From: Phaeosaccion multiseriatum | Taxonomy: Eukaryota; Protista; Ochrophyta, other classes | NCBI GenBank assembly: GCA_965112735.1 | Contig: OZ218963.1 | Span: 1,860,001 to 1,924,000, forward strand | Direction of reading: 5' to 3' | Length of the DNA: 64,000 nt | The notes under the pieces: model-generated | Told to the model about the DNA's origin: nothing | Database searches by the model: none | The model's input: the letters and a program-made list of their open reading frames with translations, nothing else | Program-made: the position numbers and the translations under genes | Part shown: positions 25,801 through 43,800 of the stretch, piece by piece | Layout of the letters: every line of letters starts with the position of its first letter | Numbering within the stretch: position 1 is the first letter of the stretch

Positions 25801-28800
25801 GAGCGTTCGCCGATGCGGATACTCTCGCGATGGAGGCAGCCGGTGACGGAGCTTTCACCTCCACTGTCCGTTTGGCGGTGACGAAGGAGGGAAGAAAGTG
25901 GGTAGCAGGGGAGGCTCAGACTTTTGAGTACTACCCAAATACAGAGGTGCGTGAGGCAGTGCAAGTCGAGCGGATACATACCTTTCACCATTTAACTGTT
26001 GCGATCGAAGACCTCTCCATTATGTTTTCCTTCCTTCCTTCCTTCCTTCCTTCCTTCCTTCCTTCCTTCCGTCCTTCCTTCCTTCCTTCCTTCCCTCCTT
26101 TCTTTCTTCCTTCCTTCCTTCCTGCCTTACTTCCTTCCTTCCTTCCTTCCTTCCTTCCTTCCTTCCTTCCTTCCTTCCTTCCTTCCTTCCTTCCTTCCTT
26201 CCTTCCTTCCTTCCTTCCTTCCTTCCTTCCTTCCTTCCTTCCTTCCCTCCTTTCTTTCTTCCTTCCTTCCTTCCTTCCTTCCTTCCTTCCTTCCTTCCTT
26301 CCTTCCTTCCTTGTTTCCTTCTTTCCTCCCTTACCCTTCACCCCCTCCCCAACCCTGCCTGCTCCGCCTCCTTCTCTACCTCTTTCTCCTCCTCCTCCTC
26401 CTCCTATTGTATTTCCTTTCCCCAGATCTACTCTTTGCGGCCCAGTCACGGTCCTGCCAGCGGGGGTAGTGTCATCAAGGTTGCAGGGAGAGGCTTCCAA
26501 GACGTACTCACTCTCTCTTGCCGCTTCGATGACCCTGGGGCGACCGGAGCCGGCTCCTTAGCTGGCTCCTTCACCGGCAGCACCGGCAGCAACGACAGCA
26601 GCGGCAGTGATGTCATCGCTACTGTCGCCGCCACGACCTTGCCGATCATCACTCCCGCTCGCTTCATCAGCCCTTACTCGGTGGCCTGCGTCACTCCTCC
26701 GCATACTGCCCGCAGCGCTCTGCGGCTTTCTGTGGCCAACAACGGAGTCGACTTTGGAAGCAGCAGTGGCACTGGTGGTGGTGGCGCTGCGGCCTTCTCC
26801 TTTGATGAAGATGTAGTGCTCCGCTCCCTCTCTCCTTCCGTAGGGGCGGAGGAGGGAGGTGCCACGGTGACGGTTTCCGGATCTGGGCTTGTCAATACCC
26901 ACAATCTCATGTGCCTCTTCGGGTCGACAATGTCCCCGGGGGCTCTGGTAGCTGCCACGTTTATCAATCCGACGGCAGTGCAATGTGTCTCCCCCCCCAG
27001 GGGAAGGACGGAGCCTGCCGTCATCGGAGTGACCGTTACACTCAACGGTTTCGACTTTGCGCCAGCCTCAACGCTCACTTACACCTACACTTCCGCCCTG
27101 ACGGTGTACGCGGTGAGCCCCGCGTTAGGGCCGGCACGCGGGGGGACGGTCGTAACCGTATCGGGCAGCAACTTCTTCAGCAGCAGTGGTGGCGGGATGG
27201 AGTGCCGTTTCGGGGCAAGTGGCATCGTCTCTGCGACGGTGCTGTCGTCCATGGAGCTGAGGTGCGTCAGTCCCGCCTCGGAGACCCTCGGTTCGGAGCG
27301 CCTGGAGATAAGGCACTCTTCCGACGGCGGCCCAGCGAGTGAGTGGACCAAGAGCGGCACCACCTTTACCTACGCAGAGGATCCCTTGGTGTCAGGGCTG
27401 TCTCCCCCTCGGGGCCCGTCCACTGGAGGCTCACTGCTGACGCTGTACGGAAGGCACTTCCCTGCCCCGTCCAGCAGCAGTAGCGGAAGCAGCACGCTTG
27501 GCTGTCGGTTCTGTGCAACCCGAGGGGGAGTTGAGGGCTTCGAGGGGCCAACGAGCAGTCCGGCGGCGGCCATTCATGTACCCGCCACTTGGCTGAGCAG
27601 CAGCAGCGTCTCCTGCATGACGCCCCCCTGGGTAGAAGCAGGAGCCTTCTCTGCTGGCGACGTGGGCGGGGGGTGGACGGTGGGTGTGTCGGTGACGCTG
27701 AATGGACAAGATTCATCCCCTACGGAGTTGCAATACTTGTATTACCCTCCTCCTGCTGTGACCAGCGTCAATCCCTCTCGTGGACTGGTGGGCGGGGGGG
27801 TTTCTGTAACCGTCTCGGGACACAACTTTGCCGACGGCGGCGGTAGCGGCGAGGACAGCAGCAGCAGTAGCGCCATGTGCCGCTTCGGCGGTTCCTCGAC
27901 TGTCACGGCCGAGTACATTGACTCGGAAACCTTGGTGTGTCTGTCCCCGCCTGGGGATGCGGTCCGTGAGGTGCAGGCAGTGGTTCTCGTTGGAGGAGGG
28001 CGTGTAACTTCCGAGGAGGAAGAGAAGGAGCAGCAGCAGCAGCAGCAGCGTGAGCAGCAGTGGGTGCATGCCTACATGCCTCCAGAGGCTGAAGAGGTGC
28101 AGAGCATTGAGGTGCGGGGCCGAGGCTGGCAAAGCGAAGTGCAGGAGGTGGTTGTACAGACGCTCATTGCCGCGGAGGAACAAGAGGTGCAGGTGCTGGA
28201 GACCTCCTTGCACCACGTGGAGGAGGTGCAGCGTATTCGTGTGGGGGCGAGAACCAACGCCAGCGAGGTGCAATTGGTACATATGATGGCAGCTGATGGG
28301 GGTGCAGGGGGTGGTGGTATTTGGGGGTGGTGGACATTACAGCACGGTTTCTACTCCTCTTCTCGCCTGAGGTGGAATGCGACGGCAAAGGAGGTCGAGG
28401 CGGCGCTGTTTGACCTACCCTCGGTGGGTGCGACGGCAGTGACGGCGGTTTCACAAATGTCGTCGGATACTGGTGCAGTGGCCTACAATGTCACCTTTTT
28501 AGATCAGACGGGAGACGTTGCTCTGCTTAGCGCCGGCGTGGATCATCTGCGCGGAGTGGTGGGTGGGGTGGTGAATGTGACGGTTACAGAATTGGCCAAA
28601 GGCGTGCCGTGCGAAGTGCAGACCGTGTCTACGCACCACGCCCCATCTGCGGCAGCATCGACGCTGAACTTTACCCTCTCGTTTGGCGCCGAGACAACAG
28701 CGGCGGTGCTGAGTGATGACACCACAGCAGAGGAGATGGAGGCTGCGTTGGAGGCTCTGGACGGGCTGGGAAACGTGATGGTGCGACGCGTGCGCCCCAA

Positions 28801-40800: not shown

Positions 40801-43800
40801 CTCTACCTGAGGTACTAGACGTGCATGTGATGCACAGCGTGGGCTACGGAGGTAGACGAGATGGCGTGTTGGTGGTACAGCAGGACGCCGACTCAGAAGC
40901 AATCACATTTGGAGCATCTGGCGGCGGCGTGGTGGGCGCGGAGAGTCGCTATAAAGTAGTGCTCAAGGAGGTGGTGCTGAATGCGTCCTCGGTGTTCCCC
41001 TGGGGGGGTGGAGCGGTGGTTTCTGACTACGCGTGGACGTGGACCACGAACCTTGCGGATGCCGGCGCTGCTGCCGGTCCCGCGGGGGCCGTGACGTGGA
41101 AGGAACAGCAGGGGAAGGGTGGCAAGGAAGAGGCGGTGATGGTCACGGGGGGCGACTTACCCTTGCTAGCAGCGGTGGGAATAGACACCTCTTCTTCGAC
41201 TGGACAGGTGGACAGCTTGCAGGGCTCCCACGTGTCTGTGGCTGTGGAGGAGCATATCAAGGGCCTCGCAGCGGAGGCAGGAGGGGTGGTGGCCGTAGAG
41301 ATTACCATGAATGGGCAAGATTACACCTCGCCCAGCACCAACTCCTCATACCCACGGGATGGTGGAGTCACCTTCCGCTACTTGCCGCGTGTCACCATCG
41401 ATGGTGTGATACCGTCGCACGGTCCCGTGTATGGAGGCACAGAGGTGCTTGTGCTTGGCTCTAACTTTGAGGCTTCCTCCTCGCTGAGCTGCAAGTTTGG
41501 GGAGGGTTTGGGAGCGGTGGTTTCCGCGGCGGCGCGGTTGGTCAACGACACTACGGTGGTGTGCGTCACCCCGCCCCGTGTAGAGACCGGCAGCGTGGTT
41601 GTGCAGGTGTCTAACAATGGCGTGGACTTTGCCGGAGGAGGAGCAGGAGGAGGTGATGGTGATGGTGGCGGTGGGCGGGTGGTGTTATTCACGTACGACG
41701 CGGTGGTGAGCATTGAGAGCGTGACACCGCACCTCGGTCCGCTGTCGGGAAACTTCTCTGTGACCATTGTCGGCGGACCCTTCGTGAGGCCGTCCTCCCC
41801 CACAACTACCACCACCAGCAGCAGCAGCAGCAGCAGCAGTAGTAGTAGTAGTAGTCTCGCTGATGGTGTCGGCGACATTCGCTGCAAGTTTGGCAATGTA
41901 ACGGTGCTGGCGGAGTGGAGAGACGAGACTGAGATTCAATGCTACGCGCCTCCTCAGGACGATGCAGGAGGAGGGGGAGGAGCAGGCGTGTACCCGCTGG
42001 AGGTGTCGTTGAACGATCAGGACTACACCACATCGCGCATGCCTTTCCTGTACTATGCAGACCAGCAGCTTACTCGCCTCACGCCCGTCTCCGGCCCCGC
42101 AGATGCTGCGGGGACTCCTGTTACAGGTACGCACCGTTCGTGTTTGGTAGTTGAAGTTGTAGTTGTGTTGTTTGTCAAACGATCTGCTTTGCCGTGAAAG
42201 CGGTTTCTTGACGACTTCTAGTCGGTGTCTTTTGTCAGTCAGTCAGTCAGTCAGTCAGTCCATCAGTCAGCGAGGGCATGGTGCTTTCTCCCTTCCCACG
42301 TGTCTGACTGCCGCCCCCCGTCCCCGTCCCCCCTCTTCCTTTCCCTCCCACCTTCCATGTGTGTCCGGACGCCATCACAGTGTACGGAGACGGATTTGTG
42401 AACTCCACCCTTCTGCATTGTCGCTTCGGCTATACGGTGGTTCGAGGCACCTACATCACCTCGCAGCAGATTGTCTGTGACACGCCACCCCTACTCCCTC
42501 ACCCCGACTCGGACACCGAAGGAGAGGATCTGCAGTGGTCCTCACTGAGTGACCAGATGCAGCGGCACCCCGACCCTCTCCACGGCAGCCGGCTGCTGTT
42601 CCCCGACAGCCACTACTACCCGCTTTACAAACAGCGCCTCGTTACCGTTGAGGTTACATGTAACGGCCAGGACTACACAGAGAGCGGCATTGGTTTTCTG
42701 TATCAAGCCGACGCAGAGGTTCATGCAGTGCACGCCGGTGGAGAAGGGGAAGGCAGTGGAAGGACCACGAGGTCGAGCGGCTCCATCTTTGTGGAAGGAC
42801 GGCACTTTGTCAACTCCACCTCCCTCACTTGTCGCGTGGGCGGGCACGTATCCTCTGCGGTGTTTCTCTCACGCGAACTCGTGGTCTGCCACGCCGGCTT
42901 GGGAACCCGAGGAGGCAGCACCAGCACCGCCACCGCCAACGTCAACATGGCCCACCGCCCTGCTACCAGCACGGGCCCTTTACCCTCTGGCGACAGGGAA
43001 GACTCGAACCCCGACTCAGCGAGCAGTATGTACGTGGAGGTTTCCAACAATCGGCTAGACTACACCTTCCAGCGCGCCACCCTCACTGCCGACACCTCCT
43101 GCCCTACTGGTCAGTTCTGCCCCCCCGGGTCGGACGAGCTGCTCATGTGCCCCCCGGGGACGTACTGCCCCGGGGAGGCCAACACGAATGTCACCCTTTG
43201 TCCAAGGGGGACGTACCAATCGGCACCGGGGCAGAGCGCCTGCCTGCGCTGCCCCATAGGCTTCCACTGCCCGGAGTTGGGTCTCCAGGTGCCCCAAGTG
43301 TGTCCTGCAGGGAAGGTGTGTGATGTAAGTGGTGTGGAAGTCGCGGACCAGCTCTGCCCCGAGGGCCACTTCTGCCTGGAGGGCACCGCCACGACAGCGA
43401 CGACGTGCGGTCACCCCAACCCTTCCAGCCGTCTCTTCCCCACCTTGCTCCACGCTGAGCGTCTCAGTACCATGATGAAGGGGGGATCGGGCGTCAAATC
43501 CATCGGTCTCGACGAGCAGCAGGAGCAGCAGCCGTGGGGTGGGGATGCCCTGGTGATGGGGTCGCGTAACACGGCCTGTTGGGACAACTCCACTTCTGAC
43601 TTTGGCCTGCAGCTGAGCGGGGTGCTTGGCCGCTTCCTGCAAGAAGAGCACGAGCTGCCTCTGTCGACAGAGAGCCCCTTCACCCCCCTGCGCGGGCGCT
43701 TCTGTCTCGACGACGCCTGCATGGGCTTGGATCCCCAACACGCGCACCAGGGCCAACATTCCCTCTCCACCCCTGGCTTCGACTACGGCACCTTTCAACT

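Follow-up and report, generated by a model that had tools for sequence, protein, structure and literature searches.

Three blocks of repeated sequence within a 64,000-nucleotide stretch of the genome of the ochrophyte alga Phaeosaccion multiseriatum (contig OZ218963.1, positions 1,860,001 to 1,924,000; hereafter the window, in whose own numbering all coordinates are given) are best read as recursively self-nested arrays of one alpha/beta domain of ~100-110 residues, a reading to which we assign a probability of roughly 0.8. The blocks belong to one giant extracellular IPT-repeat gene of the alga. A complete copy of the nested domain consists of a first beta-strand, here called strand 0 (EVQxI motif), followed by a body made up, in order, of a GGxFxL strand, a helix (NAxAxxVxxAL) and the strands VxVxR, WxVTF, GDxxxL and VxVxE. 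Within the blocks the EVQ strands are also found stacked one after another, recurring every 13-14 residues, and bodies are found that bring no strand of their own (orphan bodies). An earlier note on this DNA had described such strands and bodies and had proposed that they balance like parentheses in all three blocks, an observation that was confirmed here with a body hidden Markov model (HMM) and a strand matrix. No Pfam or NCBIfam model for the nested domain was found, and the domain belongs to a large family that is without a name.

Bodies were located by jackhmmer with one body as the seed, which yielded 10 bodies in 28316-31636 and 5 in 33202-35186, where an intron interrupts one of the five; a further 13 lie in 36672-41267, and the rest of the 64-kb window has none. 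An alignment of 23 window bodies (profile A1) retrieved the 150 relatives used for strand training. The strand matrix, 13 columns wide and trained on 514 sites directly upstream of homologue bodies, conserves E, V/I and Q and then I/V at +4, and its chance rate at a threshold of 5 is 0.64 matches per 1000 residues.

The arrangement is readily followed in block 2, where strands (S) and bodies (B), all of them on the + strand like every feature given below, succeed each other as S S B S S S B B B B. Strands 1 and 2 (33085-33105 and 33127-33147; matrix scores 13.5 and 10.8) precede body 1 (33187..33480; body HMM E 9.2e-15), and strands 3 to 5 (33571-33591, 33616-33636 and 33661-33681; scores 13.4, 14.7 and 19.6) precede the HMM-located bodies B2 (33694-34044), B3 (34045-34395), B4 (34396-34582 joined to 34756-34880 over putative intron 2) and B5 (34881-35186). 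An extra strand match of score 7.1 falls on the last strand of body 1 and was discounted; with that match set aside, objective scoring upholds the 5/5 balance proposed for this block. Body 1 is followed by a 24-residue glycine run (33481-33570), and AlphaFold2 confidence is low in such runs.

Block 1 opens with seven stacked strands, S1 to S7 (27965-27985, 28049-28069, 28091-28111, 28133-28153, 28181-28201, 28220-28240 and 28262-28282), whose matrix scores are, in order, 16.6, 5.0, 14.9, 10.7, 12.4, 19.0 and 12.6. Six of the seven are detected at threshold 5 and all seven at threshold 4, the second strand, REQQWVH, scoring 5.0. Ten bodies follow, with body HMM E-values from 1e-10 to 1.8e-35: B1 (28316-28606), a strand (28610-28630) with B2 (28652-28954), B3 (28955-29314), a strand (29321-29341) with B4 (29354-29671), B5 (29672-29989), B6 (29990-30358), a strand (30359-30379) with B7 (30389-30736), B8 (30737-31015), B9 (31016-31309) and B10 (31310-31624). 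All three strands that directly precede their own body are detected, PTVHRVA among them at 9.2, so that both REQQWVH and PTVHRVA, which had been assigned by eye, are recognized by the matrix (5.0 and 9.2), and the 10/10 balance of the block holds under scoring by body HMM and strand matrix. Serine runs occur in bodies 2 and 3, and an extra 14-residue linker rich in Glu and Gln separates strands 1 and 2; AlphaFold2 confidence is low in both places.

Block 3 is the deepest, with nine strand slots, identified by the strand matrix and by slot spacing, and 13 bodies. The slots, of 21 nt each, begin at 36309, 36351, 36393 (degenerate, PERYNLT), 36438, 36477, 36519 (degenerate, PLVLEVS), 36561, 36600 and 36657, and the stack ends at 36677; seven of the nine strands are detected, with scores of 9.3-19.4, and two lie below threshold. 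The bodies, again placed by the HMM, are B1 (36672-36944), a strand (36948-36968) with B2 (36981-37250), B3 (37251-37568), B4 (37569-37889), a strand (37890-37910) with B5 (37923-38291), B6 (38292-38570), a strand (38658-38678) with B7 (to 38984), B8 (38985-39296), B9 (39297-39620), B10 (39621-39914), B11 (39915-40238), a degenerate strand (40242-40262) with a divergent B12 (to ~40658), and B13 (40659-41267). Three of the four strands that accompany a body are detected; PERYNLT, PLVLEVS and ANVLRLR, which the earlier note had flagged as degenerate, fall below the threshold of the strand matrix, and B1, B7 and B12 give weak or partial HMM matches. These degenerate strands sit in slots spaced 14 residues apart that three orthologues retain; two of the three (P0040 and P0053) fill slot 3 with a good strand, and the third (P0064) carries a body at the position of B12. 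The 13/13 balance claimed for this block is therefore upheld as far as its 13 bodies, seven of nine stacked strands and three of four accompanying strands are concerned, and needs the three degenerate, below-threshold strands to be complete. In the order of strands and bodies given by the earlier note, bodies never outnumber the strands that precede them.

What surrounds the blocks bears directly on how they could fold. Every block starts directly past the '..C..PP' strand E of a TIG domain, and the piece 3' of each block matches only the final part of the TIG profile. The N-terminal parts of these host domains, delimited by Pfam TIG, by a TIG HMM built from the window and by an excision test, lie at 27746..27964 for block 1 (strands A-E, ending ..LVCLSPPGDAV; window TIG HMM 3-84), 32860..33084 for block 2 and 36096..36308 for block 3, and the C-terminal parts at 31888..31980 (strands F-G, ..CCEVQVSLNGG...YFFY; TIG HMM 54-89 fragment), 35187..35270 (GPSVSVRVSVNSG...LTY; 62-90 fragment) and 41277..41387 (GGVVAVEITMNG...VTFRY; 64-85 fragment), respectively. 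When the blocks were excised in silico, the fused TIG domain scored 83.1 bits against 73.0 for the N-terminal part alone in block 1, 66.2 against 58.5 in block 2 and 64.2 against 56.4 in block 3, a gain of 8-10 bits in all three, with the end of the match moving from hmm 74-85 to hmm 86-90. The two flanks of each block together make up one full TIG domain, and each block, as read from its sequence, is an insertion in the E-F loop of that domain; two intact TIG domains separate successive block-bearing ones. Pfam extends the host TIG match onto the first stacked strand, which we judged spurious, the true F and G strands coming after the block. Because the host domain is split around the block, both ends of the block must meet in space. 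A tandem array is incompatible with insertion in the E-F loop, since its ends lie far apart, whereas in an out-and-back nest the ends of the block meet automatically.

We propose that each domain receives the following one in the loop behind its own strand 0. The chain would first lay n strand-0 segments outward at a pitch of 13-14 residues, turn at the innermost complete module and return through n bodies, every body being completed by the most recent unused strand, in last-in-first-out (LIFO) order, although that strand is encoded hundreds of residues earlier; complete strand-plus-body modules would be intercalated on the return path. Each domain would be gripped by the outgoing and the returning chain alike, the array would end at its start, and since the chain returns to its start, the whole array would fit in the E-F loop of a TIG domain. 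An array of 5, 10 or 13 domains would thus project as a side branch from one TIG domain of a giant extracellular IPT filament, and folding would proceed from tip to base, that is, from the innermost domain outward. The array would probably be rod-shaped, and its outer levels would presumably follow the same exact pairing as the inner ones. That each module is inserted after the first strand of the previous one, as the earlier note had put it, is supported by the split TIG domain, by the conserved order of strands and bodies, by the ordering of strands in AlphaFold2 models and by the span of a structural alignment that joins strand S6 to body B3.

The models came from AlphaFold2 monomer runs with alignments of natural collinear nests (A3, 25 rows; A5, 26 rows), on block 1 constructs that carried an internal control, some stacked strands being included without their LIFO partner body. 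A fragment-enriched alignment (A2) was dropped; MAFFT had stacked all 87 of its single-domain fragments on body 2. Job 1 (S4 S5 S6 S7 B1 [S B2] B3) reached a predicted local distance difference test score (pLDDT) of 80.3 and a predicted template modelling score (pTM) of 0.60. LIFO pairing predicts for this construct that S7 pairs with B1 and S6 with B3, and that S4 and S5 are left partner-less; the ordering was as predicted, S6 (E37-44) and S7 (E51-58) forming beta-strands and S4 and S5 (residues 1-30) remaining coil at pLDDT 43-55. Job 2 (S2..B6, 775 residues), which adds S2, S3 and [S B4] B5 B6, reached pLDDT 81.5 and pTM 0.63. Here S4 (E35-43, pLDDT 77-87), S5 (E51-60, pLDDT 95), S6 and S7 were beta-strands, the ordered strands lying at 77-95, and S2 and S3, whose LIFO partners B9 and B8 lie outside the construct, were coil at pLDDT 38-45. 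The earlier note had counted disorder of the stacked strands, or a domain formed by these strands themselves, as evidence against nesting; in the models only strands with a partner body became ordered.

The coil state of S4 and S5 in job 1 speaks against first-in-first-out (FIFO) pairing and against a self-contained sheet, because either would have ordered these two strands. It also bears on an alternative in which the EVQ stack is a linker in its own right or a small beta-structure, the orphan bodies are complete by themselves and the equal counts merely record a history of duplication. The degeneracy of some stacked strands would fit this alternative, as would the poor scores of distal strand-body pairs under a contact potential derived from contiguous modules. 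We nevertheless hold it to be very unlikely, given that S4 and S5 stayed disordered beside S6 and S7 and formed no sheet of their own, that they were ordered only once B5 and B6 had been added, and that the 13-14 residue pitch and the exact closure of nests hold from bacteria to eukaryotes.

Comparison of the models with solved structures by VIA-align adds to the case for one of the predicted pairs. The contiguous modules align to single solved domains over model residues 49-163 (S7+B1) and 163-282 ([S B2]). In the job 1 model, matches of 90-97 residues to FliD D3 and flagellin span residues 33/34..400, drawing on ~34-44 plus 283-400, and the equivalent span in the job 2 model is 61/63/64..426/428. 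As the limits of these alignments are those of S6 and of the end of B3, S6 and the distant B3 are modelled in both jobs as one discontinuous domain around some 240 intervening residues.

These results also weigh on the possibility that the strand stack fills the orphan bodies of another molecule, in a domain-swapped dimer or a pilus-like polymer. Equal numbers of strands and orphan bodies would be expected just as well from such an exchange, and the AlphaFold2 runs were of monomers only. Yet the split host TIG domain brings both ends of the block to one place, which is most simply achieved in cis, the monomer models place the strands confidently (pTM 0.60-0.63), and S6 and B3 of the same chain make one domain in both of them; we consider exchange between molecules unlikely.

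Pairing was further examined by covariation. Across 960 contiguous modules, covariation links strand positions 3, 5 and 7 to body columns 60/58, 58 and 57/55, and positions -1 and -3 to columns 62 and 65, at Z 12-19 against a null maximum of ~5, which suggests that strand 0 runs antiparallel to the WxVTF strand. In 60 closed nests the pair score of the LIFO assignment had a mean z of 0.37-0.43 over within-nest permutations, LIFO outscored FIFO in 38-44 of the 60, and register 0 was the best among shifts of -2 to +2. A nest with some other order of pairing, FIFO or irregular, is hardly to be expected on this evidence: counts by themselves leave the order undetermined, but when B1 and B3 alone lacked a strand of their own it was the last two stacked strands, not the first two, that became ordered, addition of B5 and B6 ordered the next two outward, S6 and B3 form one domain in the models, the LIFO register has the best mean pair score, and FIFO demands that the chain cross itself topologically. 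The LIFO pairing advanced in the earlier note agrees with the AlphaFold2 ordering in the block 1 constructs, with B1 and B3 and then with B5 and B6.

The same architecture recurs in orthologues and throughout the family. Orthologues at 30-40% identity are collinear with the window blocks. Five of them (P0010, P0151, P0034, P0036 and P0063) share with block 1 the succession B [S B] B [S B] B B [S B] B B B; P0010 also shows the order of strands and bodies given above for block 2, and the other four agree with it as far as their sequence extends. Seven stack slots are present in the block 1 orthologues with complete N-termini (P0106, P0039, P0140 and P0092), nine slots at ~14-residue spacing are present in block 3 orthologues (P0064, P0040 and P0053), and the block 3 equivalent of P0064 has 13 bodies in the same order. 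One N-terminally truncated orthologue of block 1 (P0152) seems to be without the strand-less bodies B5 and B6.

Beyond the orthologues, the family counts 11,593 cluster representatives that the body profile recognizes at E <= 0.001, with members in oomycetes, diatom and other MMETSP transcripts, Planctomycetes, a Chloroflexota metagenome-assembled genome (MAG) and an archaeon. In 153 sequences 1022 free strands face 1062 orphan bodies (r = 0.75), pure nests such as S4B4, S6B6, S7B7, S8B8 and S9B9 are frequent, and the order SSSSBBBSSBBB is recurrent. Closure was tested among 175 relatives on outermost stacks without missed slots: closure after exactly n bodies coincided with the end of the body chain in 34 of 40 clean cases, whereas n-1 succeeded in 18 of 44 and n+1 could not close in 45 of 56. 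Of 906 intervals between stacked strands, 469 measure 13-14 residues, a sharp peak. Nest depth is at least 7 in 39 of the 175 proteins, with a maximum of ~13-15, the deepest figures being approximate because some bodies and strands escape detection. Depth at every exit from a body chain was abandoned as a statistic (47% at depth 0 against 34-36% elsewhere), given the noise from single modules and missed strands. Balance in orthologues, which the earlier note had suggested checking with separate strand and body detectors, is reflected in the order that they keep and, for the family at large, in the 34 of 40 clean closures.

Nests were also seen in prokaryotic members, namely P0085 (the Chloroflexota MAG; for example S7B7), P0018 (Planctomycetaceae) and P0122 (the archaeon), and the architecture is therefore not limited to eukaryotes. 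In P0002 (residues 690-1385) the stack has a period of ~36 residues, each unit seemingly consisting of strand 0 and the GGxFxL strand. In P0003 (2798-4518), P0004, P0006 and P0011, 9-13 strands are followed by ~140-450 residues without a detected body and then by 9-12 bodies; these proteins may carry another domain at the tip of the nest.

The window from 4378 to 44293 appears to be nearly all one giant IPT/TIG gene on the + strand, since the TIG profile built from the window has ~78 + strand matches there and TIG repeats occupy nearly the entire stretch in successive large exons. The three blocks lie on three of these exons, within open frames at 26435-32137, 31510-34698 and 34587-42197 that are in three different phases and uninterrupted over 1900, 1062 and 2536 codons. 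A Pfam scan of the three exon products gave IPT/TIG matches (PF01833; E 7.1e-53, 4.7e-10 and 2.1e-35) and none to any other family. The sequence has a eukaryotic character, and the nearest relative with a name is a partial protein from the ochrophyte Phaeothamnion confervicola (P0010; 39% identity). Between the open frames lie short stretches of microsatellite-like translation, (TCAC)n and (GT)n. Putative intron 1 was placed at 31625..31887 from its junction sequence and the change of frame (GTACGT...CAG, phase 0; it contains the (TCAC)n and (GT)n microsatellites), and putative intron 2 at 34583-34755 (GT..AG, phase 1), where it splits body B4 of block 2; splicing it out gives a full body of 42.4 bits (hmm 4-97), where the first exon by itself scores 26.1 bits (hmm 4-52). 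Both have canonical GT..AG ends, and their removal restores a full body and a full TIG domain.

It is highly improbable that the region is not translated as read, being a pseudogene or having another exon structure, and that its balance survives only as a relic. Window 31200-35200 is covered by four public runs of one sample, which would be compatible with this, as their contigs look genomic because they enter intron sequence and break at microsatellites. The intact frames of 1900, 1062 and 2536 codons, the canonical introns whose removal completes a body and a TIG domain, and the collinearity of orthologues at 30-40% identity argue against it. 'Joints' in the runs were dropped as a splice signal; those listed sit in GAG-rich low-complexity sequence. 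Downstream of the last TIG domains, Ephrin-receptor-like cysteine-rich repeats occur at 42359-45214 (PF07699, E 1.4e-06 and 3.2e-04), and the open reading frames further on, at 46933-57508, have no Pfam match.

Several points weigh against reading the blocks as self-nested arrays. The balance of block 3 depends on three degenerate strands and on three weak or partial bodies. In the AlphaFold2 constructs the absence of a partner is confounded with N-terminal fraying, because in both jobs the strands lacking a partner occupied, by design, residues 1-30, and the alignments were shallow (25-26 rows) and of paralogous nests. Of the predicted pairs only S6-B3 is backed by alignment ranges, the S4-B6 and S5-B5 pairs having been read from order versus disorder. 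The covariation weakly supports LIFO pairing, its effect being small and the nests being related to each other, and distal strand-body pairs score -1.1 against +2.7 for contiguous modules. Finally, the exon junctions were placed from genomic sequence rather than from transcripts.

Domain insertion is usually one level deep, whereas members of this family seem to reach 4-9 levels as a matter of routine and 13-15 in some cases, with one beta-strand left outside each insertion. We think it somewhat more likely than not that for the family at large (more than 11,000 cluster representatives in phages, bacteria, archaea and stramenopiles) recursive self-insertion after a single strand is the normal way to build long, rigid projections whose two ends lie together, at depths of 7-9 in the window and ~13-15 in relatives. 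No known nested domain architecture would then be deeper, and the design would be a distinct one, in which the chain zips up on itself from tip to base. Confirmation would provide a balanced-parentheses structural rule that can be read from sequence and a natural case of obligatory long-range strand complementation within one chain, would explain how a multi-domain rod can be planted in the loop of another domain, and would join phage virion decoration proteins and giant eukaryotic surface proteins in one large unnamed family. Tools that assume contiguous domains would mis-segment such proteins.

Among known systems, the outer domains of FliD and flagellin are likewise inserted one within another, with nesting of 2-3 levels and dissimilar domains. 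The likeness in fold of the modelled domains to FliD D3 and FliC D2/D3 amounts to Z 4.8-6.3 over 90-98 residues, a range that the tool calls common, with a Foldseek probability of 0.4-0.5, and no FliD or flagellin Pfam family matched in the exon products at E <= 0.01. RRM-like ferredoxin folds are also among the more distant structural matches.

Relatives of solved structure are found in phages. The nested domain shares homology with the decoration domain of mycobacteriophage Bxb1, which occurs in the tail-tip cage protein gp23, at the C-terminus of the major capsid protein and at the C-terminus of the tail tube protein gp19 (PDB 9D93, 9D9W/9D9X and 9D94; 9D93 is the Bxb1 tail tip according to its entry title and to a citing preprint, bioRxiv 10.64898/2025.12.12.693979). 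Against PDB sequences, profile A1 reaches E 3.5e-30 with gp23, 8.3e-07 with the capsid protein and 7.7e-04 with the tail tube, and in PHROGs the domain lies at the C-terminus of a major tail protein (phrog_10909, 8.6e-12) and in a tail sheath family. The predicted fold is shared as well: Foldseek matches a model to the decoration domain at E 3e-08, and over both models VIA-align gives Z 13.7-14.2 for gp23 and 9.5-10.7 for the capsid C-terminal and tail tube domains (10.7 for the capsid in the job 1 model), the alignment of gp23 390-524 with the modelled S7+B1 having Z 14.2 and a root mean square deviation of 1.9 A over 102 residues at 26% identity. By likeness to these domains, the algal arrays may act as stiff or rigid adhesive, glycan-contacting or decorative projections. 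In gp23 the profile matches three N-terminal halves consecutively and then C-terminal halves, which suggests a three-level nest split at another loop, apparently past the second body strand (profile position ~47) instead of past strand 0; with P0002, this indicates that the split point may differ between lineages. Depth and setting differ too, gp23 being a phage virion protein with an apparent nest of 3 levels and the algal blocks, of 7-9, being part of a eukaryotic IPT filament. No published description of the nested family or of equally deep nests was found, although the Bxb1 structure paper may describe the gp23 nest.

In chaperone-usher pili, by analogy only, an incomplete sheet is likewise filled by a strand encoded elsewhere (donor-strand complementation); there it is supplied by a different subunit and completes an Ig-like fold, whereas here it would come from the same chain and the fold is ferredoxin-like. 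Similar in principle is the Si3 insertion of cyanobacterial RNA polymerase beta', whose SBHM domains are a recursive insertion of one domain type (PMC13114784; PMC11515920) and which was the most complex case in a survey of 48,551 insertion events, at six levels (PMC13114784). The earlier note knew of no recursive self-nesting as deep as this; recursive nesting itself is known to six levels, and no deeper case was found. As six-level nesting had already been published, the blocks would represent a deeper form of a known architecture, and what is new is the greater depth, the single-strand split and the large unnamed family. As in Si3, one domain type is repeatedly inserted into itself inside a host. 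The SBHM fold is unrelated, the best structural matches here being phage decoration, FliD and RRM-like folds, and the depth of 5-6 in Si3 compares with 7 and 9 stacked strands plus the host TIG domain in the window and ~13-15 in relatives. In contrast to Si3, the N-terminal piece left outside each insertion is here a single strand, which gives rise to a periodic ladder of strands 14 residues apart.

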